From the NCBI GenBank assembly GCA_020891255.1, contig BQFW01000014.1, positions 620,001-684,000 on the forward strand: 64,000 bases of DNA. The letters are read 5' to 3'. This DNA comes from Entomortierella parvispora E1425 (lineage: Eukaryota; Fungi; Mortierellomycota). Below the pieces are notes generated by a model. That model was not told the DNA's origin. It ran no database searches and saw only the letters and a program-made list of their open reading frames with translations. The translations under genes were made by a program, and so were the position numbers. Shown in pieces: positions 1 through 57,337 of this stretch (the stretch's first letter is position 1; every line of letters starts with the position of its first letter).

Positions 1-1050
<1,050 letters not shown>

Positions 1051-1279
1051 ACGGAGTCGACACGGACGAGCTTCTATATCGAGGAACTTGCAGGAGAATG
1101 ATACCCTGATAATAAAGAAAACAAAACATCTACATTTATTTGATGAGCTACATCTCTGACAGACCAATATATATCAGCAATATCCGGCATGGAGATATCG
1201 AGGCTTTCTCTCCTTCGCTTCGTAGGCCAATTACAATCGAGAACTTCTCCGACCCGTCCCAGTTTCGATCATCACCGAG

Positions 1280-1837
1280 TCCCCAGAGCTCATTTTTCAC
1301 TACCAATCCAACGACTGAGATCTGGGTTTCTGTCAATACTACGAATTGAGCATGAGCGACAGCGATGCGGTCCGAGAGCTGTTCACTTTGACTGGAGAAG
1401 AGGATTGTTTCTTCTGCCCTCTCTGATACCTCAGTCGTGAGATGGCCAGGACCAAGCCAACTTGCAACTCTCGATTCAACTGTGGTCGTGATACGCCCTT
1501 GGTCGATGCAAGTTACAGCTCTTCAAGCACCGGCCGTGTTTGTCACTCTGCTGATAGCCAGCCCGTCTTTGGAAGTGGCGATGCTGTCCCTGGTTACTCA
1601 CAGACTGGAGACCATGCTCAGTTCTCCAGACAAGTGATTGATCGATGGACTACCTTTTCCAAGGGAGCCAGTCCAAATCCTAAGCCTAGCCAACAGGGGG
1701 TGTAGAGTTGACCTATCCCACTGAACAAGCATCAGCTAGTTGCCCAACGACAACCCGAACTCCTCGGCCTTCAGAGTGCAATGTTGAGCAATCTGGAGAA
1801 TGCCCCTTGCACGTGGCTCGATGCCGCCTTGCAATAA
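1280..1837 (+). pseudogene. Degenerate C-terminal fragment of a type-B carboxylesterase (alpha/beta hydrolase)
   Basis: Frame 2 reads D-x-FFCPL*YLSREMA..GRVCHSADSQPVFGSG..FSRQVIDRWTTFSKGASPNP..NLENAPCTWLDAALQ*, resembling the F-x-CP, catalytic-His H..D...VFG and W..FA..G.PN segments of COesterases. In-frame stops at 1424, 1703 and 1709; no upstream GESAG-containing part. Confidence 0.65.
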
Positions 1838-3134
1838 TTCTGGCTCCAGTCCCCGGGCAACACGTCTCAAAGCTGAATGAGCAAAGTCATTTATTTATCG
1901 ATATATTCTGCGCGGATAACAAAAGTCCTTTTCAAAACAAACCTCAGTACAACAGCGAACATGAAAAGGCCCGAAGATCCTGAAGTTACTGTCCTGTCAT
2001 TTGTTGCTGCCCGTCCTTTTTTTCCGTCTCTGATCTACGCGCCACCAATGCTTGATTACATTAGTTCAGCCACAATCGAATTGGATCCTACCTCTTGCAT
2101 TCCTTCATCCCTGCATTCCTGCGCTCTGTCTTTCCTGCACTGTCTTTCTGCGCTACAGCTTGCCAAAGGAGGCTCAACCGAACGCGTACTGCATTTCGAG
2201 CCTGGCCTCTGTGATATGCTCCTGATCCAATGCACGCGAATTGCTCATATTTCTTTCTGTTCACCTCCGGTCTTCTGCGACACTCCATCTTTCCTGCAGC
2301 AAAAACGTGTCATTCACTCTTATTTCGTAAATCTATTGAAACAAAGAAAGAAAAAGATGATTTTTCAGTCATGTCGCCTCCAAAATGCCCTCCAATGCCG
2401 AAAAAACGCGCGCAAAGGACGCGTCTTTCGTCCACTCCCTCGCAGACAGCATGCTCCCCTCCATCCTATGGTCACGCTTTCCCCTGCCAAGCCTCATCCG
2501 AGTCCCGAGTCAAGTTTTTTTTTATGACCAAACACGTTTTCCTGGCTCGAGATGCTCGCCATTGGCCGCCTCCAAGCGCAAAGGCCTTCTCCCGAGTCAT
2601 TTTTTGCCCTATGTGGGTTTGAAGGTGCCAGTTTCTGAAGGAATGCAACCAACCAGGACGTGAATGTAAATGAGCCAGATGAATCCTCGTCCACGAATGC
2701 GCCCATTCCGCCATGCGCCACTCATGTCTGCGACCATTCTTCGTCGAGATTCGAAGGAGAGAAGTTGCTTACATGGTTTACATGGTGCGTCATACTCAAG
2801 GCGCTTTTTGCCTTTTTGGGAACGCCGGGAGGACCTTACAAGACAACATGGGATTTGTGCATGAGGATGGAGGGGACATGGTGTGGGAAGGGAGGGAAGG
2901 ACAGGGAAGGGGAGGAGGGTATGTGGAAGGTGAAGGTGAAGGAAGTAGGTAAAAAAGAGAAATGCTTGCATGGGATTTATACGACAGGGAAAAAAACAAG
3001 GTTGATCGGGGTCCGTCCCTTTTCGTACAAATACCAGCCCTCGCCCACTTTTTTTTTGTTGTTCTTCATCGCATCTTGCCTTCTTCAAAGCAACTTCTCA
3101 AGCACAAAACACCACTGCAAAGCCCTTCCTCCTT

Positions 3135-3165
3135 TGCCTGCCTGCCTGCCTGCCTGCCTGCCTGC
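3135..3165. repeat. (GCCT)n microsatellite
   Basis: Direct reading: gcctgcctgcct... about 7-8 units. Confidence 0.9.
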
Positions 3166-3344
3166 CATGTTTGCCGTCTGCCGCCACCAAGAACTCAAGG
3201 CTCCCTGCCACGGTCCTAGTGACCCTCCTTGGTGATCAAGCATCCGACCACCTCCTGCCTTCAAGACCTCTGGTGCCTATCATCCTTGGCAACCAAGAGC
3301 AATCTCGTCCTTGGCCGGGCCTCCTTCCGCGACGATGCCTCTGC

Positions 3345-4315
3345 TCGTCCATCTGCAAGAACAGCCGTCTTCCATTCGGCTCATTGGCCTCTTCCATTCC
3401 GCGTCAAGAACAAGACATTGGCTCGAGCCCGCCACCAAGAATCTTTCGCGACTGCTCTCTGCGGTTGCAAGAAAGGAACAAGGTTCTCTACTTGGTCCCT
3501 CGGGAGGGTCTTGAGCTTCCCTGCTGAAGCACTACCCTCCAGATACCATGGGAGTTCCTGGCGTGCTCAACGGCCCTTTTGGGCCTTGAGCGACTACCTG
3601 CGCCTCCTTTTGCCGTTGCTGACATGGTTCTGTACCTGGTTCCTCGGCGGGTATTGAGCTTCCTTTGTTGAAGAACTACCTGCCTGATACCTTGATGAGT
3701 TCCTGGCGTGCTTCACCTGCGCCTTGCTTCTGCCTTTATTCTTGGTCTGGCCACCCCGTCTGCAAGAACAGCTGCCCTCCATTCAGCTCATTGGCCCGCC
3801 TCATTCGCGACCAAGTTCAAGACATTGGCCCGAGCCCGCCACCAAGAATCTTTCGCGACTGCTCCCTGCGGTTGCAAGAAAGGAACAGGGTTCTCTACTT
3901 GGTCCTTCCGGAGGGTCTTGAGCTTCCTTGCTGAAGCACTACCCTCCAGATACCATGGGAGTTCCTGGCGTGCTCAACGGCCCTTTTGGGCCTTGAGCGA
4001 CTACCTGCGCCTCCTTTTGCCGTTGCTGACATGGTTCTGTACCTGGTTCCTCGGCGGGTATTGAGCTTCCTTTGTTGAAGAACTACCTGCTTGATACCTT
4101 GATGAGTTCCTGGCGTGCTTCACCTGCGCCTTGCTTCTGCCTTTATTCTTGGTCTGGCCACCCCGTCTGCAAGAACAGCTGCCCTCCATTCAGCTCATTG
4201 GCCCGCCTCATTCGCGACCAAGTTCAAGACATTGGCCCGAGCCCGCCACCAAGAATCTTTCGCGACTGCTCCCTGCGGTTGCAAGAAAGGAACAGGGTTC
4301 TCTACTTGGTCCTTC
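3345..4315. repeat. Tandem repeat, 407-bp unit, about 2.4 copies, with nested 144-bp-offset sub-repeat
   Basis: Anchor ctgcaagaacagc at 3353, 3760 and 4167 (period 407); duplicated ORFs at 3594/4001 and 3665/4072. Within a unit, ggttctctacttggt.. (3482) recurs diverged as ggttctgtacctggt.. (3626). Confidence 0.95.
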
Positions 4316-6008
4316 TTTCCTTTCCTTCGTCTAGTAGCATGTGTGGTGTGTGGGGGGCCGTTTCTGTGGGCGCCAAGGGTATAACGTCTGGTTAGGAGTC
4401 AGGGCTCACGCTCTACAGTTACTTCCTTTGATACCTCACCTCGGGCCAAAGTGCAGAGCGGTGACTAGATAGCTGGGTCGGGTTGGGTCAATGTCATCGT
4501 CATCAATCTTTTAAATACATTCAATTTCCAAACGGGTCAAAGAACCCTTTGCAAACCAACACATCTTGAACAAACAATATGAGATTGAAGAACAAAAGTT
4601 TGAGGACCATGAACTTTTGAGCAAGATATTTTCGATGCAACATACATGTTTTACTGAGGGAGGCATTTTGCATGACACTGCTGGCTTGGAACCAAGCGCT
4701 GTTCATCACACCTCGGCAGCCCCAGATGGGGAACTCGAGCTGCTTGTTTCTAGAGAATAAAAAAGAATCCTACAAGTACGGATGATCAGCTCTGACGTGA
4801 TGATCATCTTTGGACCCTCCTCCTCCCAAAGTGCTGAAGTCCAGTACATGCCACTGACTGGATCTGGAGCCTGATCAATCTTGTCCGCTGGCTCCTTCGT
4901 TCAAGGATGATTCACTCTGTAAATGACATGTCTGCCATGGCGCAACCCTTCGGGGTGACAGGTTTTGGACACAAAATGACCTCCATCTCCACATTGGACG
5001 CTCCTTACTTCTCCTCACAAGATGCCCATCCAGCGAAAGGGCGAGGGCGACTCCAACGCTGGTGCAACAAAGACGTGTTGCGGTTACAGGAATCACAGTC
5101 CTTCGGCTGCGGTGGTGGTGCAAGGAAGCACACGACACATGGGCAGCGTTGAGGCTGGGGAGATCCAAGGGTCTGCCACGAATTGTGGGGCGCATCGAAC
5201 TCGCCCCTGGTGAGAGCCTTTGTCTTTACAACGTTCACAATTTTTTGTCCAACAATGTGGTTTGAGCCGAGGTTGCAAGTCATCAAGTGAAGCACCACCA
5301 AGAACAATTGAAGCTGAGATACCCCATCATTGACCTGGAGTTCCGGCAGAGGCTTTTGTAGGTAAAAAATGTCTCTCATAAAAGAAGGACGAGCACTAGA
5401 AGGTCGCTTCGGGTTGCCGTCTTTCTGAGCTTTCTAATTGCCTTTGTCATACCGCGTTGTTGAACGTTTCCATAAGTTCACAGGTCGATTTCTGACATGG
5501 TCCTCCCCCGGCCTTCCCAAATGGAGTGCAAAGGAGATTTGTAAGGCAGTTTTCCCCTTCTTGTTCTCCAGATTCTGTTGGTCCGAACAAACGTTTGTTC
5601 GGCTCCCTTTCAACCCCACATTGAGTCTCCACATTTTTTTTCTTTGTCAAAACATACACTCCTTCTCAACGTTTACTCAACCCTAATGGCAATTTGCTCT
5701 GCCGCACGTCCAAGCCAAAAGAGCCTTGGTCGCAAAACTCATTATCGATGAGCCGAGTTCGTAAGCGCGCTATTTTTTGATTTCAAATGGCTGCAGGGAC
5801 AATCTGAAAGCTCTGACCCTGGGAACATGCCCGTTGGGACAAAGTAGCAGCTCGGTGTTGGAAAGAGAAGAGGAAAAGTGTCTGCTATAAAAGCCTGAAG
5901 AGTTTCTGACCAAACTGCTTCCATTCTCTTTATCGTTCTGATCCCACTCATCTTTCTTTTCATCCACCTAACTCTTTCTTCTCTCCTTTGAAGCCTTTAG
6001 TGTCAGTC

Positions 6009-46246: not shown

Positions 46247-49200
46247 CTAGATTTCCTTTCCTAATCCTTCAGGACCCTCCTTCTCAAGCTCTTTGATCTT
46301 GGATTCGACCTCTACTGGAGTTGATGTGACATCTTCATCCATCGCCTGGTCGTCCGGGTTCTGCTTCTCGCCTTGCGCCTGCTGTTGCGCAGGAGAATGA
46401 CTGTGTTCGTAATCATGGTCGTAATCGTGCTGGTGTCTATCGTCGTGGCGACTTGTGTTCTGAGAGAGATCGTCAAGTCCCTGCCCTTGGCCTTCGCGTC
46501 CGTCTTTAAAGTCTCCAAGGTCTTCATCCATGTCCATGTCTGTTGTTGCTGCTCCTGCATCCGCTGAAGCTGACGTTATCATGAGGGGTAGAGCGACCTC
46601 CATCTCTTCCTCTCCTTCCTTCTCGAGTTCCGGAGACAGCTGCTCGGTTTTGAGCCCCACTCCTTCTCCTCCACTTCTTAAGCCTTCGTCATCGCGATTG
46701 CTATCGTCCACCTCGACGTCGTCTACACTTTCGTGATGCGATGCAGACAAAGAAAAGGAGCGAAAAGATGTCGTCAAGGGAGACGACATCATTTTTCGCA
46801 AGGCACCACTGCTACTGTTGTTCCCTGCATGGCTGAGGTGGCTGGTGTGGTTGCTGTTGTTATTTGACCCAGAGCGTGCTCGAAAGTGTCGTTGCTGCTG
46901 CTGTTGTTGTTGTTCTTGTTGTTGTTGAATTGACGCCGGCAGAAAAGCCATAGGGGGATGGGGGAGTCGTGGGAGAGGAGGAGGCGTGATCGAAAACGTG
47001 CCTTCGCTCCTCTTAAACTCCGGGAGATCTGGCAACTCGTCCATAGTCAATCTTCCACTCGCCTAGAATTCAATTAATAGTAGTTAGTATCTGTTGATAG
47101 ATAGAGACAGGCGAAACTTTTCGGCGTCGGAGAGGAGAGAGAGAAACGTACCACAAGTCCAGCCCAATCCATGTACATCTTGATGGTCAATTCTAAATGA
47201 GGCTCTTCAGGTGATAGCTCAACACATCCCCAAGGATGATCTCGACAGCGTTTTCCATACTGAGTCTGAAGCCGCTGTGCGTACTCGACTACTTCTGAAA
47301 ATTGTACCGTGTTCTTCCCTGCTCCACCTGACAGTGAACTCGTAGTAGAGGATATCGAGGGTGGCTGCGTGGGGACTGGAGGAATTGAGTCTGAGGCTGA
47401 GGTGCCTCCCATAAAGGAGGGACCAGCTGGTAGTGTGATGGGTGAAGAAACTACCCCATTTGCTCTTCGATGTCGAGAGGTAGACGGACTGCCCGAATTG
47501 CGAGAAGAGCTTGGTCCAAAGAACGGAGAGGCTGATCCCAATGGCGGGGAAGCTGCGTTCTTTTGAACAAGAGCCACGTCTGAACTTCCCCAGCGGAAAT
47601 GTGCACCTTCATGATCTCCCTTGGCTCCAGGCGAAGGTGTCATCGGATTAAAATCTCTGCTGTTTGAGTGAGAATGCTCGGCCTAAAGCGATTCAAAATA
47701 TCAGTTATTCGATTAGGAACTTGCTAAAACCTACGGGCGCGCTCACGAGCTCTGTTTTCTTTTCTTGATTACCATTCCAGACGCTTTGGACTGCACTCGT
47801 AAGGTTCCCGCGGAGGCATGGCGTTTCAAATTCATGTGGGGTCGCATGTCGTCATCTTCGTCCATACGATGATCCCCGTCAAAGTCTTCGATCATTCCTG
47901 CTTGCAAGCCTCCTTCGGCTCCCTCATTAGGCAGGCCGTCTGACCCTCGTTCGGGACTTCTTGGAGATGCCATATTGCCTGCTATAGACAAGTTCGGATG
48001 GATAAGTTGGTTTAGTTTGTCAACGTCGTCAAAAAAAAAAAAAAAAAAAAAAAGACCGAAAATATACTCAAAATAAATCATCAAAGTTGACATACAAAGA
48101 TCCTGCCGTTTTCGCTTCACATTTGAGCCTTGATACTGAGGATACACGCTGATCTCTCCACTCGAGTACGGAGAGCGTGCAGCAGCAGGTCCTCCTGAAT
48201 AAACGGTTGTTGGAGGTGAGGAGGGCGAGGATTCATCTTGCTGAGTTGATGGTCCAGCAACACCCATAGACTGCGAGTGATAGGCGCTGTCGGTCCAGGT
48301 CGAGCTCCTTGTTTCTTGTGACCGAGACGAAGATGATGATGAGGGTAACTGAACTGGTGCAGAGTGATATGTGTTCCTGTGTCCATTAGAAGATGACGCT
48401 CTTTGACTCTGCGGGTATTGGTTTTGGCGATTATTATTGCTCATAGAAGGCGCTTGCTCCAGGAACGGGTACGCGTACGAGGAAGACGGTTGTTGCTGTT
48501 GCTGCTGAGAGGGTTCCAGTGATGATTGAGGTGAGCCGCCACCTGCTGTTGTGCCAGTTTCGCGACTTGATATAGACAAACTCGCAATCTTGGTGGTATC
48601 AATTGGCCCACTGCTGGTATAGTGACGCTGACGACCTCCGTTCTGGGATTGAAGTTGCTGTTGCTGTTGCTGTTGTTGCTGTTGTTGCTGCTGCTGCTGT
48701 TTTAATAGCTGTTGCTGTTGTTGTTGATGATGTAACGAAGGAAACTCGATCGTGACTGGATGAAGAGTCAACTCCTTCAACAACGCCACCACCTGGTCGT
48801 CATAGCGGATCGAATCCCAAGGGAATCCCAGGTTTTCCTGGTGCTTCTTCAGTCCATTGACATACCAATGCAGGTTGCTTGACTTGATCCGTTTTGCCTG
48901 ATGTCTCAAATATTTCAATATGGCATCTCGCGAGATCGGGTATAAACTTCCATCTGGGTTCAACAAGTTTAGCTCCTCGGCAATTTTGGAATACGTTCGC
49001 CACGCGGTAGCGTAAGGATCCTTCTTCTTCGGTCCAGTGGTTGCCGTCGTTGCTAATGGATCTGCAGCAGAGGCGACTGTATTGCTAACATTTGGACCAC
49101 TCGAAGGAATCGCTGCGGCCAATGAGGAGGAGGACATGAGACTTGATCGCTGTCCAGCAGCGGTCAAATGGCCTGCAGAGGTACTGTGATGTAGCCGGGG

Positions 49201-49911
49201 TTGATTGTAAGGGGGAGACGGCGCGTTGGAGGGAGAAGACGTAGATGAAGCAGACGAGGAAGGCGGTTTTGGGGGTGGGTATTGAGGTTGAGGATGGGTC
49301 AGGCTCGAAAACGAACGTGAGTGTGGCCTTGATGTAAATGACGGATCTGAAGTCCTCCCGGTGACTGCTAGATTGCGATAGTGGGATGGCTCTTGGATGG
49401 CGTAGCTCGAGGAGGAGGAGCGGTCGCGGTGATGGTGCGGATGGTGATGCTTCGAAGATGGGATCGCGTGAGCGGGTGGCGGTGGGGAGTCATACGCACT
49501 ACGGTTGTGGCCATTACTGCCATAGCCGTGATGCTGTGGATACTGGGGTGCCATCTGTGGAGGGGACGATATAGAGGGGGAAGAAGGCTCTGGCGGCGTT
49601 TGATAGTGATCATGGTAACGTGGATTGGTCGCCAGGGAGGACGATGACGAGGATCGAAGGGAAGAGCGGGGAGGGGGGCCAGGTGGGGCAGCCATTGACT
49701 GATCGGGTTCGGACCATTGTCCGTACGAGTCCCGAGGATCGGCAGAGGGACGGCGGTAGTCGTGCGACTGTCGATGTGGAGAGTGAGGTTGGTGCCGATG
49801 CTGGTGCTGGTGATGATCCTGGTACTGGTGATGATGTTGCTCCGGGGAGTAGGGAGGGTGGGCAAAGGACTGGTACGCCTCGGACGTGGACGCGTGGCTG
49901 GAGCGACTCAT
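46247..49911 (-). CDS. 1124-aa low-complexity protein with tyrosine-recombinase core-binding (SAM-like) domain, polyQ and C-terminal C/H-motif domain; putative DNA-binding regulator
   Basis: Exons 49911-48096, 47981-47747, 47659-47152, 47062-46247 sum to 3375 nt (in frame) with gtatgt/gtgagc/gtacgt donors. Folded islands at 48754-49020 and 47020-47316. Confidence 0.8.
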
Positions 49912-52900
49912 TCCTTGTTCAGGCAGAGGACAAGGGGACAAGGCAGGGCAGGGCAGGGCAGGGCAACTGGATGCAGACAGGTCGGGAGATAGATAAATGT
50001 TGGGTATTGATACAGAAAGAAAGGCAAAAGGAAATGAAGTCAGAAAACTCGCACTCTTAACTAACTCCGAGGGGAGCTTTCAGAAACGGAAGACAGATGG
50101 TGGGGGTACAAATAGTACAAATAGTACAAATAGAGATCCACACTGGTCTCTCGTTTGCCTGCTTGACACGGCTTCAGTGCGGTGCAGTGCAATTGGAGGG
50201 AGAAAAAGAGAAAGAGATGACAAACGCAGGCACCCCTCTCCTGGCTCTCTATAATAGCTTGCACGCACGCTCCAGACGCACCCAAAGGAACAATGGCTGG
50301 TGACCCGTGTAAGGAAGAAGGTACAATTGGATGACGATGATGTTGTCCACAAACTCCTCCCCCACAATCCACGCACCAATTAGCCTGCAGCAACCCTCAA
50401 AATCACGGCCGGCTGTCAATGGCAAGAGAGCATGGATCAAAGAGAGGGAGGGAGGGAAGGAGAGAGGGAGGGAGGAGAGAGGGAGGGAGGGAGAGAGATA
50501 GGGCAAGCAAGCGTAAATTACAGGGTACTTTTGCCTGGGTATAATTATTGTTGTTTTGTGGGGGTGTGCGTCTGGTGGATGTGGTCGGGATGGCTGACTG
50601 CAGCAGGCGATTGTGCCTGATTAGTCCGCATTGATAATTGGATTGATTGATTGTTGGGTGCGTGCAGTGGCCAAGAAGGTTAATTGTTTCAACACCCTCT
50701 GCATCTCTTGACCTCTTCTCTCTCTCTATCGCTCTCTTCGTCTGTCTATCCTTTATCCTTTCTTCTCTTATTCATCTTATTCATATCCCCTTCCCCTGTC
50801 TATCCCTAGAGTCTCTTCATTTCCCACTTTTTCTTCCTCTCTCTCTCTCGCTAATTTTATAACAGGCACGCACATTGTCATCCCACCGGATGCTCTTTTC
50901 CTTTTCATCTACCAAAATCTCCCCTGCCGCTCGTCCGTGTCAAGAGAAACCAAATAAGAAATTTTCATGGGCAGGGTGGAAAAGTGAGCCTGCAACGGTT
51001 GGACGGGAAGGGGGTGGGGGATTGTACTTTGTACCAAATTCTAAGCCTTTTTGGTGGTCGAATAGGTGGCTGGAGGGGAGGGTGACAAATGAAAGGACTT
51101 GTGCACTGCAAGGCGATGGGTTTGCCTCCAAATGAAATCCTGACTACACTTACAGCTACGAAGATGAAATCCTTGGTCGTGACGAAAAGAGGTGGACACT
51201 TGAAAAACAGACCCCTGTTTTTTTGATGGGGGAAGAATGGCTGAAAGTACGCCTTCAGCTCGGAGCAAAAGAATGTGATTCCCAGGTCGCGTGAGTGACC
51301 CTTGTGCAGCTGCAGGTGAGAAGATAGAGAAGGAGGTGAAGACAGGGGAAGGATATCGATTATCGGCCGCAATGCAACGCCCGTTGAAGGATGAAGGGGA
51401 AGGGAAAGGGCTGTTGCTTTAGTAGCAGGATGAGAATGGTTGGTGCGAGTGCTCAGAGGCAGAAAGTATTTGTGGGGGGAAAGAGTCGGTGTCTGGACGG
51501 ATGATCTATGAAAAAAATCCAGGCTACTGGTCCCCGATTGCCGAAAAAAAAAAGGTCCGCGAGAGCGAGGGGGGATGAGTGGAGAAGTGAGGAATAGATA
51601 TCTACACTAGAGATTCTATATCGGTCGGTGTGAAGGGGAGATCAGAAGGATTCAGAGTAAGAAGAGGTGAAGCAGTGAGTGGACAGTGAAGGAGCAATCA
51701 GGAATGGAAAAGGGGAAGAGTAAAGAAAAAGAAAGAGAGAGAGAAAGAAAGAAAAAGAGAAACATCGAGGACTGAAAGAACACCAAATCTCAGGAACGAG
51801 GGGACTGAGCTTTCTCTGGCTGCAGGACATGAGGGGAAGGCAGTCGAGTGAAAGGAGGCCCATGGCCCATCCATCAGTTATCAAACCAACACTGCCCATC
51901 GTTCTTTATTGCTATTGCCGTTACTATTGCCGAGATGGGTTACCTACTCGGGGGCCTGCCTTCCCCAGTGACACCTTGCTCCACTTGCCACTCACCCACT
52001 CATTCACAAACGACGCACACCCCCCTCTTTGCAGTCACCCGCCGCCCTTGGCTTTGGCCACTGTCCTCGCACATGCAGGCTGACAGGTCAGTCAAGACAA
52101 CAGATCCTCGTACTCTTCTGTGAAAACGAAGACCCGGCTTTGTTATTCTATATTCCTACTTTCGCTTCCAATGTTGATGTTACTCCTTGTTGATGTTGCG
52201 CGCTGAGCGAAGAAGAGGAAGAAAAAAAATGCAGAGGCGAAAAGCAACAAGACCAAGAGAAAAGAACCTTTTTTTTTTGTAATGGCAGGTGCCACAAGTC
52301 TTTGTTGAGTATGGCAACAGGTTCAACAGAAGAAAAAATAAAGGAATACTGGCGACAATACGATCCAAAGAGTACCAGGTGGGAACTAGCATGATATTGG
52401 CCCTCCTTCCTCTTCCATGGTCCTGGTACCCAGTGAGAAATAAAACATAGATTGAGCAGGAAGAGTCCACAAGCGCTACCAGTTGCAAAGTACCCGCGTG
52501 TCTTTTCCTATTCAATGGGTAGAGGTAAACTGTGTCCTACCCGGTCAAATAAAGCAAAGCGATTGAGTCAAAGAAGAACGGACGCCCAATGCTCAAAAAG
52601 CAAAGAAGTTCCGGGTGCGCTGCATCATTGGCCCTGGGGTCGGGAACGAAAAGATTCAGTCTTGTTTGGGAGCTGAGTGCTCTTGTGTGGCCCCGCCCCT
52701 CTTCCTCTCTATCTGCCTCCACTTCCGAGCGCCTTTTGTAAGGCGTCTACAAAAGATCGATTCAAGGTTTCTGAGATTGCTCTCTTGCAAGGGTGGTTGG
52801 GGTCAGGGAAGAAAAAAAAGTTTTTTTAAAAAGCATTCCCACATCTACCCGCTCCACTACGCCTTGTAGGTACTGAGGAAACTCTTGAGTTACTCTCAAC

Positions 52901-54918
52901 GAACTAGGCCACAGTGGTTTCTCCCCCTTCCCCTTCCTTTTCACTTCTAATTGAATTCCTTGGACCAGTTCAACAGAGGGAGATAAACACTTGATCGATT
53001 GCGACGCTCGTCTTGGTGTAGCAAGTGTGGAATAGAAAAAAAAACATTAGACCCAAAACTGGGCACAACGCTAAAAGGGCTTCTCGGGTTGCACAGCAAG
53101 AGCGCCGATGGCCGGCCTCTCCATGTTGGGTGAATAAGAGGGGGCTCACTGTTGTGGAGGAAGGGCGGAGGGGAGAGTCAAAACAAAAGAAAAAAAGAGG
53201 GCAGGAAGAATGGCCTGATGTTTTTGTTTGCTTGCCCTCGCTTTTCAGGCTGTGATTCCGTCCATTGGATTGCCCACTTTGCCGTTGCACTGTGTTCACT
53301 TGTAGCGCCAACTTCCAATGAATACAGCCGCCCTTCCAACGGTCTCGACCTCGGGCTGCGAGCGTGTGCATGTGTTTGTTCCCTCGAAACTCTTTCCCCT
53401 ATTGTCAAGAGGAGGTTGAGGAAGATCGCCCAGCCAATGACACCTGAAAGTCTGATCTCCAGAACGTGCGATCAACATTCATCTCCATCCTTCCTTCCTT
53501 CCACTCGCTCTTGCAGAACGTTTTTACGTGCCCTTTTTGCTGTGCCTGGATAAACTGTTGGTAATCCCGTTTTAAGTAGAAGGCGGAGCAGACCATCATG
53601 CACGGCCTCTTACACCAACTGCAAGTTGATGAAATGAAAAGGTACTTGTTTATCGAAAGAAAAGTGAATAACAAACACAAAGGATGCCATATATTTTTTT
53701 TTGTAGCGAAAAGTATTCTGTCAGCGATGACCTGTGGGATTCCTTGTTCACTTTCTCTGAGAGGGATAGAAAAAGAAACTGCTCTCAACTTGAAATCGTT
53801 TTCGTCAGCCTTTTCTTCTCCCTACTTTACTCCACACACTCGTAGCAGGACTTTTTGTACCCGAGTGGTCTGGGACGAACAACAAAAGCGCACGTTTCTG
53901 CTGATGAATATCAAAAGGCAAAGCGACAAACAGCATCAATAACAGTCAACAAGGCAAGGACGCCCTATCGCAACAGAGTTAATTCAAAGTGACAAGGCGC
54001 GGTATGTTATTGTTGTTGCCCAAAGAAACGAAGGCATTCCTTTCTTGTTTGCGTATTGTCCCCGCCCCGACCATTGAGCGCGTTTTCTTGTTTCTTTATT
54101 GTTCTGGCTCCTTTACTCCTCAAGCTCATGCTATCAATGCCTCGAGATTAATCTTCTACGACATGAGAGTCAATGAGATCTCCATCCCTTCCCCGATCCT
54201 GCAAAATGAGAAAAACGCGTCAAAGACGCGTCTGATACCCCTTCATTGTCCAGGTCAGGCCTTCATGGGAAAATGTGTTTTCCAGTTGATCCTGGTGCCA
54301 TCCGCCTCTCTTGATGCACAATACATGCAAAGAGATACGTTTTGAGCCATCGTTAAACTCGTTAGCAAAGGTCTACTTAAAATTCCTCGATCAGGTTCTT
54401 TGAAAGTAGAGAAATGGTGCAAAAAGGGCGAAAATTCTATTTTTTTTTTTTTTTTTTTGTCGATGAGCACACTGGACATGTGCTTGGCGGCCTTCGGGTT
54501 GTAAATAAAAACAGCAAACGAAACACACCGAGCAGACGAAGAAGAGAAGTGTGGAGCAACGACTCTTGCATACGAATTGTGCTGACCATTCTGTGCAACC
54601 GTGGGTCTCCACATTGTCCACTGAGCAGAACCTCCACAATTTCCTCCTCCGACTCTATTTCTCTTTCTCTCTCACATGCCAGAGTGGCAAGGTTCGAGCA
54701 ATTGGATCCACCCTTCCTGCACTCTTTCTCTCTCTCGTCTTCTCCCTCAATTCTTTCAAAAGTACGATGCTTTTCTCTCGAGCTTTCATCCAAGGTGTAT
54801 AGTGCATTCATGATCCTCCAGTTGTCTGTTCACTTTTTTTGTTCTTTGCAAAATGGTTCGAATGATTGTGATTTTTTTAAAAGACAAAGCGTTTTTTTAT
54901 GACTAGAAAAAAACATTT

Positions 54919-56484
54919 TTACTTGGAGCCAAGGGTGGGGAAAAGCTCGGCGTCGGCAACATCGACAACGGGTCCACGGGGGGCACGGGGAGCACGGGGA
55001 GCAGCGGCACCACGGGCACCACGGGCACCACCGCGGGCACCACGCTCACCACCACGACCACCACGGGCACCGCCGCGGGGAGCAACGGGCTCGCGAGCGG
55101 GCTCGGTGTAGCGGACCTCGATATCCTTGATCAAGACCTTGGTCTCCTTCTTGCCCTTCTTGGCTTTGGCGACAGAGTCGGCGCGCATCTTGATGAAGTC
55201 ACCGGTCTCCTCGACCTCGAGGACCTTGGCGTTCTTCCACTGGGAATCGTCAGCGCCAGCGTTGGCGGCACGGGCCTCAGGGAGAGCGATCTTGAGGGCC
55301 TTAGCAGCCTTCTCCTGGAGGTAGTCATCAAGAGTCTTGACAACGGGCTCGGGGACGGCGGGCTCAGCAGCCTCAACGGCAGCGGCCTCAGCGGCGCTAA
55401 AAAAAGGGCATTTACAAAAAATGTTGGCAACACGATGAGTTGGTCGATCTTTTTCTTCCATGCCATGAAGACCCTGTCGTCTCTCGATTCCGGTACTGTG
55501 GTTCATAGTCAATAGATGTTCAACTTACACCTCAGCATCCTTCTCGCCCTCAAGGGGAGCGGTGGTGGCATCACCCATCACGCGGTGCTCCTTCTTGTCG
55601 CTGTTCTCAATACCGGTACCGGAGTGACGGTCGAGACCACCGTGGCGACCGCCACGGGGAGCGCCGCGGGGGGCACGGGGGGCACGGGGAGCACCCTCGC
55701 CGCGGGGAGCGCGGTCGAAACGGGGTCCACGAGCTAAAGATGAAGGTGAAGATCGGTTGGCGTTAATGGTTTTGACCTTAAAATTGTTGTTCCCTGTATG
55801 CTTGCGATTTCCCTGTCCGTGCGACTGTTCCTGAAGAGTCCATGGCAATGCATTCGGGGTTATCGAAGAGTTGAGTATCTTTCCGAACAGAGAGCATGTG
55901 CCTTTCCCCTGTTAACTCACTATGTCTGGTTTGTGCTGGACCGAAGTTGAAATATCGGCCAGCCTTCCAGCACTACAATTTGAGTTGGTCGGGCGTTTGC
56001 TGAAATAGTGTTGGGAGTTGGAGTGACAAGAGTACTCTCAGATCTACATTACTAGATCAAGGGTTCCTCCTAGAATGCAAGCAGTACGGTCCATCGGTTC
56101 CTGAAGAAATGACTGTTCCCCTAAATGATCTGTTGGTCGACCATGGCCTGATCAAGGACTCTCTCCATTGTCAATGTCGGTTGTCTGCTCCTGACACACA
56201 TTCGCTTTCGTTGCCTGTCCAAGGGTCGGTTGGTGTCTTAAGGTCCACTCGCACTGGGCTGAAAACTCTTTTCTCCGGTGAGGTGACCAGCTCTTACCAT
56301 CACCCTCTCTGGGCTTGTTGTTGCGGGCACCCTCCTTGCGGGGGGCCTTGTTGTCAACGGGCTTGGAAGCAGTGGCGGGAGCCTTGGCAGCGACCTGCTT
56401 GACTTCCTTCTTGACGGCGGGGACCTGGATCGTCTGATCCTGAGCGTCGTCGTTGAGAAGGTCAAAGATATTTGTAGACGCCAT
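54919..56484 (-). CDS. STM1: Stm1/SERBP1-like ribosome- and mRNA-binding protein (289 aa)
   Basis: MASTNIFDLL N-terminus; LDRHSGTG; KTLDDYL; RGG-rich tail; DAELFPTLG end. Exons 56484-56298, 55733-55529, 55396-54919 total 870 nt. Confidence 0.9.
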
Positions 56485-57337
56485 TGCCTGTTGATGAAGA
56501 TTGAGATCGGCCGAGAAAAGGGAGTCATCGAGATGTTAATTGATTGGTCTACACAGGGGGAGTTTTCTGATCGAGTTGATTTCCTGTCCATGATCTCCCG
56601 TCGCATTCCCAGCGAAATCAATTCAACAAAAAAAAATCATAATAAAAAAGTCTCTCGGTGGGTGCAAATCCGTCGATCAGTCCCTGGGCGAGTCAGCAAG
56701 TCCATGGGTCGATCAAGAGTTGGGAGGATGGTCCCGATGCCGGGGATGAAGTCGCACAGAGCCAGCGATACCGATGGATGGTATCCTCGCAGACCATGGA
56801 TGGTCTGTTGGAGCAATGGATGTGTGTCCAGGAAACGGGTCCAGAGCAAGCAATGCGGCGCTATGATTGGCTCCTGAGTGGGTCGTAGAGTACTCTGTCC
56901 CGATTCAATCGCAGCCACGGTCTCGCTGCAGGCGTGGGGTCGCACCTTTTTATAAATTTGTTGAGAAGGAGCGCAAAACTTGCTGGCTTGCAGGCCGCAT
57001 TAAGTCCCTGCTGGGCTGGACTGGGTCCAGATATCTGTGGCTGAGCCACCTATCTCGCCTGCCTTCACTTTTTGCTCTGCACGCTCACTTCCATGCTCCC
57101 CTTTCTCTCTATCTCTCTTCCTCCCTCTCCTTCTTTCTTCCCCTCCGTTCTACAGCCACGTCCTCACTGACGGCATCCCAAACGACCATCAATTGCACCC
57201 AGAGAGAGGAGAGAACTTCGATTTTTATGATTTTTTTTTTTTTGAAATTTATTTTGTTTGTTTTCTGATCATGACAGAGTGGGAAGGAGTCGTAACAAAA
57301 AAAGAGAGCGAGAGGAGAATGCAACAAAAACAATAAT

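Follow-up and report, generated by a model that had tools for sequence, protein, structure and literature searches.

How does a domain that resembles the N-terminal part of a tyrosine recombinase come to lie within a long, low-complexity protein of an early-diverging fungus, and is the gene that encodes it a working host gene or the remnant of a transposon? This question is raised by a stretch of 64,000 nucleotides from Entomortierella parvispora E1425 (contig BQFW01000014.1, positions 620,001 to 684,000; hereafter the window, in whose coordinates all positions are given). A first-pass annotation had noticed an 89-residue island at 48754-49020 and had proposed that it represents a domesticated piece of a DIRS or Crypton recombinase. 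The gene in question occupies 46247..49911 on the minus strand from ATG to stop, and its model, built from the sequence, encodes 1123 amino acids. Two conserved domains are found in the product, namely domain 1 (aa 295-386, 48754..49029, minus strand), which includes the island, and domain 2 (aa 801-872), which is absent from the first-pass annotation. We consider it likely that the gene is a host regulator of the Mortierellaceae whose domain 1 was derived from the recombinase of a Ngaro/DIRS-type retrotransposon, with loss of the catalytic half. By analogy with known systems, the gene product is probably a DNA-binding transcription regulator.

Fold and descent of domain 1

When 48754-49020 is translated on the minus strand, the peptide of the first-pass annotation, which had stated no strand, is obtained exactly, plus TLHPV; the plus-strand translation contains many stops. 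The island lies in a 732-aa open reading frame (ORF; 47743-49941, minus strand), and domain 1 directly follows a conserved KKK patch. From an alignment of 33 sequences, AlphaFold2 predicted four helices (residues 14-27, 41-52, 57-73, and 85-96) and a short turn (79-82), with a predicted local distance difference test score (pLDDT) of 82 and a core above 90. In a Foldseek search of the Protein Data Bank (PDB) with this model, ranks 1-26 were all taken by Cre or its engineered variant Tre, with template modeling (TM) scores of 0.59-0.64 and a root-mean-square deviation (rmsd) of about 2 Å over 83-87 columns, and only unrelated noise followed below. The AFDB clusters matched by Foldseek contain proteins named core-binding domain, Tyr recombinase, integrase, and reverse transcriptase. 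VIA-align, a wide structure search independent of Foldseek, likewise placed Cre (residues 32-136) first with a Z score of 12.1, followed by QRICH1 (Z 8.5), the integron integrase IntI, domain 1 of Ndc10 (Z 6.7), XerA, and DNA-bound ALOG (Z 6.6); several phage integrase N-domains were found further down, and lambda Int was among the matches. A language-model search led to Phage_int_SAM_1, QRICH1, and ALOG. Judged from the predicted model, the fold of domain 1 is thus that of a tyrosine-recombinase core-binding (SAM-like) domain, as the annotation had read from the sequence pattern; the best matches were all to Cre. The fold is shared with the N-terminal domains of Cre, XerC-XerD, and lambda Int (rmsd to Cre of about 2 Å over 85 residues). 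In contrast to these enzymes, no catalytic domain follows domain 1, sequence identity amounts to 11-15%, and Pfam scores stay below threshold.

The relationship to true recombinases is also significant in sequence comparisons. When 1.84 billion proteins were searched exhaustively with domain 1 by phmmer, 45 matches were obtained, of which those outside the Mortierellaceae belong to Glomeromycotina, chytrids, and metagenomes. Among them are two recombinases, P0074 and P0073, at E values of 7.5e-5 to 9.1e-5, and in BLASTP the window's domain 1 shares 30% identity with P0074 (E 4e-14). A profile built from the host proteins alone, without recombinases, was aligned to the recombinases by hhalign over 95 columns with 98.8% probability and an E value of 1.3e-16. 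The signatures W-x-N-x-D-G-S-x-F/Y-P-I-S and LSAL-H-LGF-W are common to domain 1 and the retroelement recombinases. In P0074, P0073, and a third recombinase, P0072, a catalytic region lies C-terminal of the core-binding domain, with box I seen as GLGRVYEL, GLARLRE, and GLARISEL, respectively. P0074 and its relatives also carry the Lys hairpin, FRAGGATH, and GRWTSQAWELYI, and the catalytic positions R, K, R, W, and Y are present in P0074. The host profile did not match P0095, a more ordinary recombinase; domain 1 is therefore related to a single lineage among the recombinases of retroelements. Only chance matches were returned when PDB sequences were searched with a domain 1 profile, and a word-based protein search with P0074 retrieved close relatives only.

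The element that encodes P0074 (L001; metagenome contig ERZ19400609 scaffold_5243, 1-5004) is an apparently complete tyrosine-recombinase retroelement. Its 1068-aa ORF for gag, reverse transcriptase, and RNase H overlaps with the 379-aa recombinase ORF that follows it, and, as read from the sequence, RNase H and recombinase lie too close together for a methyltransferase to fit between them. The direct repeats are arranged in the order A1 ... B1 A2 B2 (1-220 equals 4619-4838, and 4454-4508 equals 4950-5004), a layout that we take to be the split direct repeats of Ngaro/PAT-type elements. The assignment of a donor reverse transcriptase rests on a language-model search of the 1068-aa ORF (score 0.97 to RVT_1/RT_RNaseH clusters, with 10 of the 10 best named matches in agreement), on motifs read by eye, and on a second element (L007), in which P0072 lies directly downstream of an ORF with a recorded RVT_1 match. 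Because the closest recombinases follow reverse transcriptase ORFs, one of them within split direct repeats, the donor appears to have been an element of Ngaro/DIRS type and not a Crypton. The DIRS side of the derivation proposed in the annotation is therefore upheld by these relatives of Ngaro/DIRS order; a Crypton origin of domain 1 was rejected, since no sequence relationship with Cryptons came to light. Although domain 1 has its nearest relatives by sequence in L001 and L007, the window gene differs from both, since it has no catalytic region, no reverse transcriptase/RNase H ORF, and no split repeats, and its neighbours are constant across genera. A search of PDB sequences with the 1068-aa ORF was blank, and the integrase of L001 was likewise undetected by Pfam.

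Several observations weigh against this descent. The Foldseek E values of domain 1 are weak (0.05-0.3), though the matches are uniform, and the Pfam models for SAM-like domains (PF02899, PF13495, and PF13102), ALOG, and QRICH1 all stayed below any threshold on the window protein; of the comparisons proposed in the annotation, the structural one with Cre thus succeeded and the one with PF02899 and PF13495 did not. P0074 itself carries a Ser at the usual place of the first catalytic His, Pfam finds no reverse transcriptase in the 1068-aa ORF, and L001, the best donor-like element, comes from a metagenome. PF02899 reached an E value of only 0.045 on P0074. Small helical bundles readily reach middling structural scores, which together with the failure of the SAM-like Pfam models might suggest a four-helix bundle of other origin that converged on the recombinase domain. 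As the phmmer and profile links to full recombinases are significant, however, and the W-x-N-x-D-G-S-x-F/Y-P-I-S signature is common to the family and the recombinases, such convergence is very unlikely.

Host gene or transposon relic

The gene model consists of four minus-strand exons (49911-48096, 47981-47773, 47682-47152, and 47062-46247), across which the reading frame is preserved. All three introns are of the GT-AG type, in line with the three ordinary introns described before: intron 1 (47982..48095) reads GTATGT...AG with a T-rich tract, intron 2 lies at 47683..47772, and intron 3 (47063..47151) cuts domain 2. Their support comes from splice consensus, frame, and comparison with orthologs, and the 1123-aa model aligns along most of its length with annotated orthologs of 890-1400 aa. 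Since intron 3 breaks the profile match of domain 2 at one and the same point in the window and four further loci (L003-L006), its position is conserved. In the N-terminal 294 residues and in the 415-residue linker, S, P, Q, H, T, G, and N make up 62-66%, which agrees with the S/P/H/Q low complexity noted around the island, and the reported polyQ tracts and basic patches (KKK directly N-terminal of domain 1, and KRKR) are both seen in the translated gene. The C-terminal tail (aa 960-1123, 164 residues; 46250..46741, minus strand) is acidic, with 48 D+E versus 13 K+R and an isoelectric point (pI) of 4.1, and is a candidate activation region. The island had been called a lone domain; it is the sole recombinase-type domain of the protein, but domain 2 accompanies it.

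If the gene were a transposon relic, traces of an element might be expected at the locus. As the annotation had stated, none were detected: no Phage_integrase or DUF3504 match was found by Pfam in the window protein, whose remainder is low complexity and domain 2, no reverse transcriptase was found at the locus, and no terminal repeats flank the gene, with only coding microsatellite-type (CAG-type) repeats nearby. Moreover, a profile scan of the window recovered a single copy each of domains 1 and 2 and no related element.

Gene order points in the same direction. Loci of Linnemannia elongata, Entomortierella parvispora, Gamsiella multidivaricata, and Mortierella hygrophila share an order in which a malic enzyme gene and a gene for about 300 aa are separated by 3-7 kb of gene-free sequence from the family gene, which is followed by a convergent protein kinase gene; of these loci, only that of Gamsiella showed the malic enzyme, and it ends before the kinase. 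In a tree of the concatenated domains 1 and 2, two ancient paralog clades are resolved, each spanning the same genera, and the window gene groups with P0011 of L. elongata and P0015 of Gamsiella. Because the same neighbours surround both clades, an old block duplication is suggested as their source.

The selection check proposed in the annotation indicated strong constraint. Between loci, third codon positions of domain 1 differ by 46-57%, first and second positions by 4-12%, and amino acids by 3-11%. Nonsynonymous divergence (dN) is 0.02-0.10, and synonymous divergence (dS) is saturated, so that dN/dS is not expressible as a number and the codon-position differences were used in its place. 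Across the Mortierellaceae, the identity of domain 1 is 80-95%, while the flanking low-complexity sequence falls to about 40%.

On these sequence comparisons, the window gene is a host gene under purifying selection: it is syntenic across four genera, occurs once in the window, and is linked to no intact element. A transposon relic was rejected on account of the synteny, the paralog clades, the codon-position pattern, and the missing reverse transcriptase, catalytic domain, and repeats. A decayed fragment or a misjoined gene model without a function of its own, for which one might invoke the indirect support of the introns and the fact that chance can yield low-complexity ORFs, is hardly credible in view of the same observations, to which the conserved intron within domain 2 adds.

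The 5-kb desert upstream of the gene (49942..55101) also stands: in tblastx comparisons this stretch showed no coding match with the orthologous loci, though the flanking genes did match, and gaps of 3-7 kb without conserved coding similarity lie at the matching place in four other loci. The gene-free stretch may be a large regulatory region. Only in a locus of E. parvispora (L004:3193-8112) does the gap contain a gene, of 1496 aa and with a Cas12f1-like_TNB (Fanzor/TnpB-type) match; in the window and the remaining loci it is empty. The neighbouring gene of about 300 aa (about 55102-56491, minus strand) is conserved in all loci and belongs to no Pfam family; 9-nt periodic G-rich repeats at 54956-55732 form part of its coding sequence, giving a Gly/Pro-rich product.

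Proposed function and known parallels

A close precedent is found in plants. ALOG proteins (LSH1/G1, PF04852) carry a lone core-binding domain from the recombinase of a DIRS-type retroelement, reused in plant regulators (PMC3537659). In Cre, Xer, and lambda Int, the core-binding domain touches the major groove of the core site, and ALOG is a sequence-specific plant transcription factor (PMC3537659). The window protein likewise presents a lone recombinase core-binding domain in a host protein. It differs from ALOG at the junction of helices 2 and 3: ALOG there carries a zinc-ribbon insert (HxxxC ... CxC; PMC3537659), whereas in the window protein only four residues, with no Cys or His ligand among them, link helix 41-52 to helix 57-73. 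Furthermore, ALOG is a plant family of short proteins, while the family described here belongs to Mucoromycota, and the window protein, at 1123 aa, carries the conserved domain 2 as well. Membership of ALOG was rejected for want of the zinc-ribbon insert and of a Pfam ALOG match.

A role as regulator is favoured because of the ALOG precedent, the basic character of domain 1 (pI 9.5) with its conserved KKK arm, the polyQ tracts, and the acidic tail. In the proposed mechanism, an ancestor would have captured the N-terminal core-binding domain alone from a Ngaro/DIRS-type tyrosine recombinase, whose catalytic half was lost, and the captured domain would now lie within a long Q/S/P/H-rich protein together with a putative zinc module and the acidic tail. 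The product would act in the nucleus, where we infer that domain 1 binds DNA by analogy: the four-helix domain with its basic arm would contact the major groove as Cre, XerD, and ALOG do. With its disordered regions and acidic tail, the protein could then recruit the transcription machinery, and domain 2 might provide an additional protein or nucleic-acid contact. The annotation had suggested an independent domestication giving a DNA-binding or chromatin factor; the domestication part, a host gene with a recombinase-derived domain, was borne out, and DNA binding and a regulator role stay at the level of analogy.

A further point on the opposing side is that QRICH1, the second-best structural match, sits on DNA together with a zinc-finger protein, to go by the title of its entry, so that domain 1 need not read sequence alone. 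The product might accordingly be a co-regulator or chromatin adaptor, in which domain 1 holds DNA without sequence reading or clamps a DNA-bound factor, and domain 2 and the disordered regions serve as protein contacts. This would also suit the occurrence of the domain 2 fold in many fungal proteins, several of which have SAM protein-interaction domains. Nevertheless, Cre, Xer, lambda Int, and ALOG contact the major groove directly through this domain (PMC3537659), and an identity of 80-95% across genera suits a fixed DNA target. An adaptor is therefore an unlikely, if conceivable, alternative to the DNA-binding regulator.

Still less probable is a transposon repressor, in which the lone domain 1 would occupy the recombination sites of related Ngaro/DIRS-type elements and, as a dominant-negative decoy, shut out their recombinase. 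The nearest relatives of domain 1 are indeed the DNA-binding domains of such elements. Transposon targets change fast, however, whereas domain 1 is nearly unchanged across the Mortierellaceae and common to the Glomeromycotina; no related element lies in the window, and the polyQ tracts and acidic tail resemble an activator.

Reuse of recombinase parts by the host is also known from Cryptons, which gave rise to Ndc10/Cbf2 and the Gcr1 family in yeasts and to QRICH1/ZMYM in animals (PMC3212892). Domain 1 of Ndc10 and QRICH1 resemble domain 1 of the window protein, in structure only. A catalytic-like but degenerate domain is retained by Ndc10 and, in the form of DUF3504, by the animal genes QRICH1/ZMYM, and Gcr1-type factors rely on GCR1_C; in contrast, none of the Pfam domains Ndc10_II, GCR1_C, DUF3504, and QRICH1 was found in the window protein at E values up to 10. 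A 2026 paper on Glomhopper, concerning Cryptons of Glomeromycota, states that fungal analogues of such domestication are little explored (PMC13465315), and a 2013 survey of DIRS and Ngaro elements in fungi leaves domestication unmentioned. The present family is unnamed in NCBI and UniRef, and no earlier description was found in the literature searched, in agreement with the annotation's claim of an undescribed family in early-diverging fungi. The principle is thus known in plants, yeasts, and animals, and the Mortierellaceae family itself is probably undescribed. Transposon-born transcription factor families have shaped regulation in plants (ALOG) and animals (QRICH1/ZMYM). With its identifiable donor-like elements, the present family offers a clean, datable case of domestication; it also yields a candidate regulator for two groups of fungi that are of ecological importance, the Mortierellaceae and the arbuscular mycorrhizal fungi.

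Domain 2 and the range of the family

Domain 2 is conserved as strongly as domain 1. Its first part (aa 801-852; 47152..47307, minus strand) lies at the end of exon 3 and comprises a helix, an invariant C-x2-H-x3-C-x8-H pattern across a beta hairpin, and a second helix; its second part (aa 853-872; 47003..47062, minus strand), ASGRLTMDELPDLPEF, lies at the start of exon 4, the profile match being divided by intron 3. Across 43 sequences, no variation is seen at L, Y, C, H, G, C, H, L, W, and A, and AlphaFold2 likewise predicted helix, beta hairpin, and helix with a pLDDT of 77. Because the putative C-H-C-H ligands are invariant, domain 2 is probably zinc-binding.

Pfam returned no family for the window ORF, each exon, or both domains at E values up to 10, nor for the 43 domain 2 sequences. 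Comparison of domain 2 with solved structures by Foldseek and VIA-align gave no credible match (best Z 4.3), a profile search of PDB sequences gave chance matches only, and a word-based protein search with domain 2 of P0070 found close relatives only. DUF6649, a weak language-model lead (score 0.79), was dropped as it was unconfirmed by Pfam. Judged from its predicted model, domain 2 appears to be an unnamed fungal module with a fixed C-H-C-H pattern, which comes to light here in addition to domain 1. In the predicted-structure libraries AFDB and ESM Atlas, many proteins share the fold of domain 2; they are uncharacterised, stem from Glomeromycotina, Basidiomycota, and Ascomycota, and in several cases contain SAM domains.

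The family is conserved in all sampled genera of the Mortierellaceae, and arbuscular mycorrhizal fungi have it as well. In Glomeromycotina, domain 1 is followed by domain 2 in proteins of 250-580 aa from Geosiphon, Ambispora, Acaulospora, Gigaspora, Funneliformis, Paraglomus, and Diversispora. No Mucoromycotina member was among the phmmer matches, at single-sequence sensitivity. As the two-domain layout is common to Mortierellaceae and Glomeromycotina, the fusion would be older than the split of these lineages. A more far-reaching reading, which is tentative and rather doubtful at present, sees an ancient two-domain regulator specific to Mortierellomycotina and Glomeromycotina that joined a retrotransposon domain to the unnamed C-H-C-H module before the split, with the lone-domain proteins of chytrids arising from the same donor lineage. 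If this were true, a whole class of DNA-binding factors of recombinase origin, a counterpart of ALOG in plants, would lie hidden in fungi. The chytrid proteins have domain 1 without domain 2, and one metagenomic protein with a lone domain 1 has ordinary host genes as neighbours. In two chytrids, Clydaea vesicula and Lobulomyces angularis, proteins of 886-888 aa (P0061 and P0083) carry an unusual array of five or six tandem copies of this core-binding domain and no other recognised domain.

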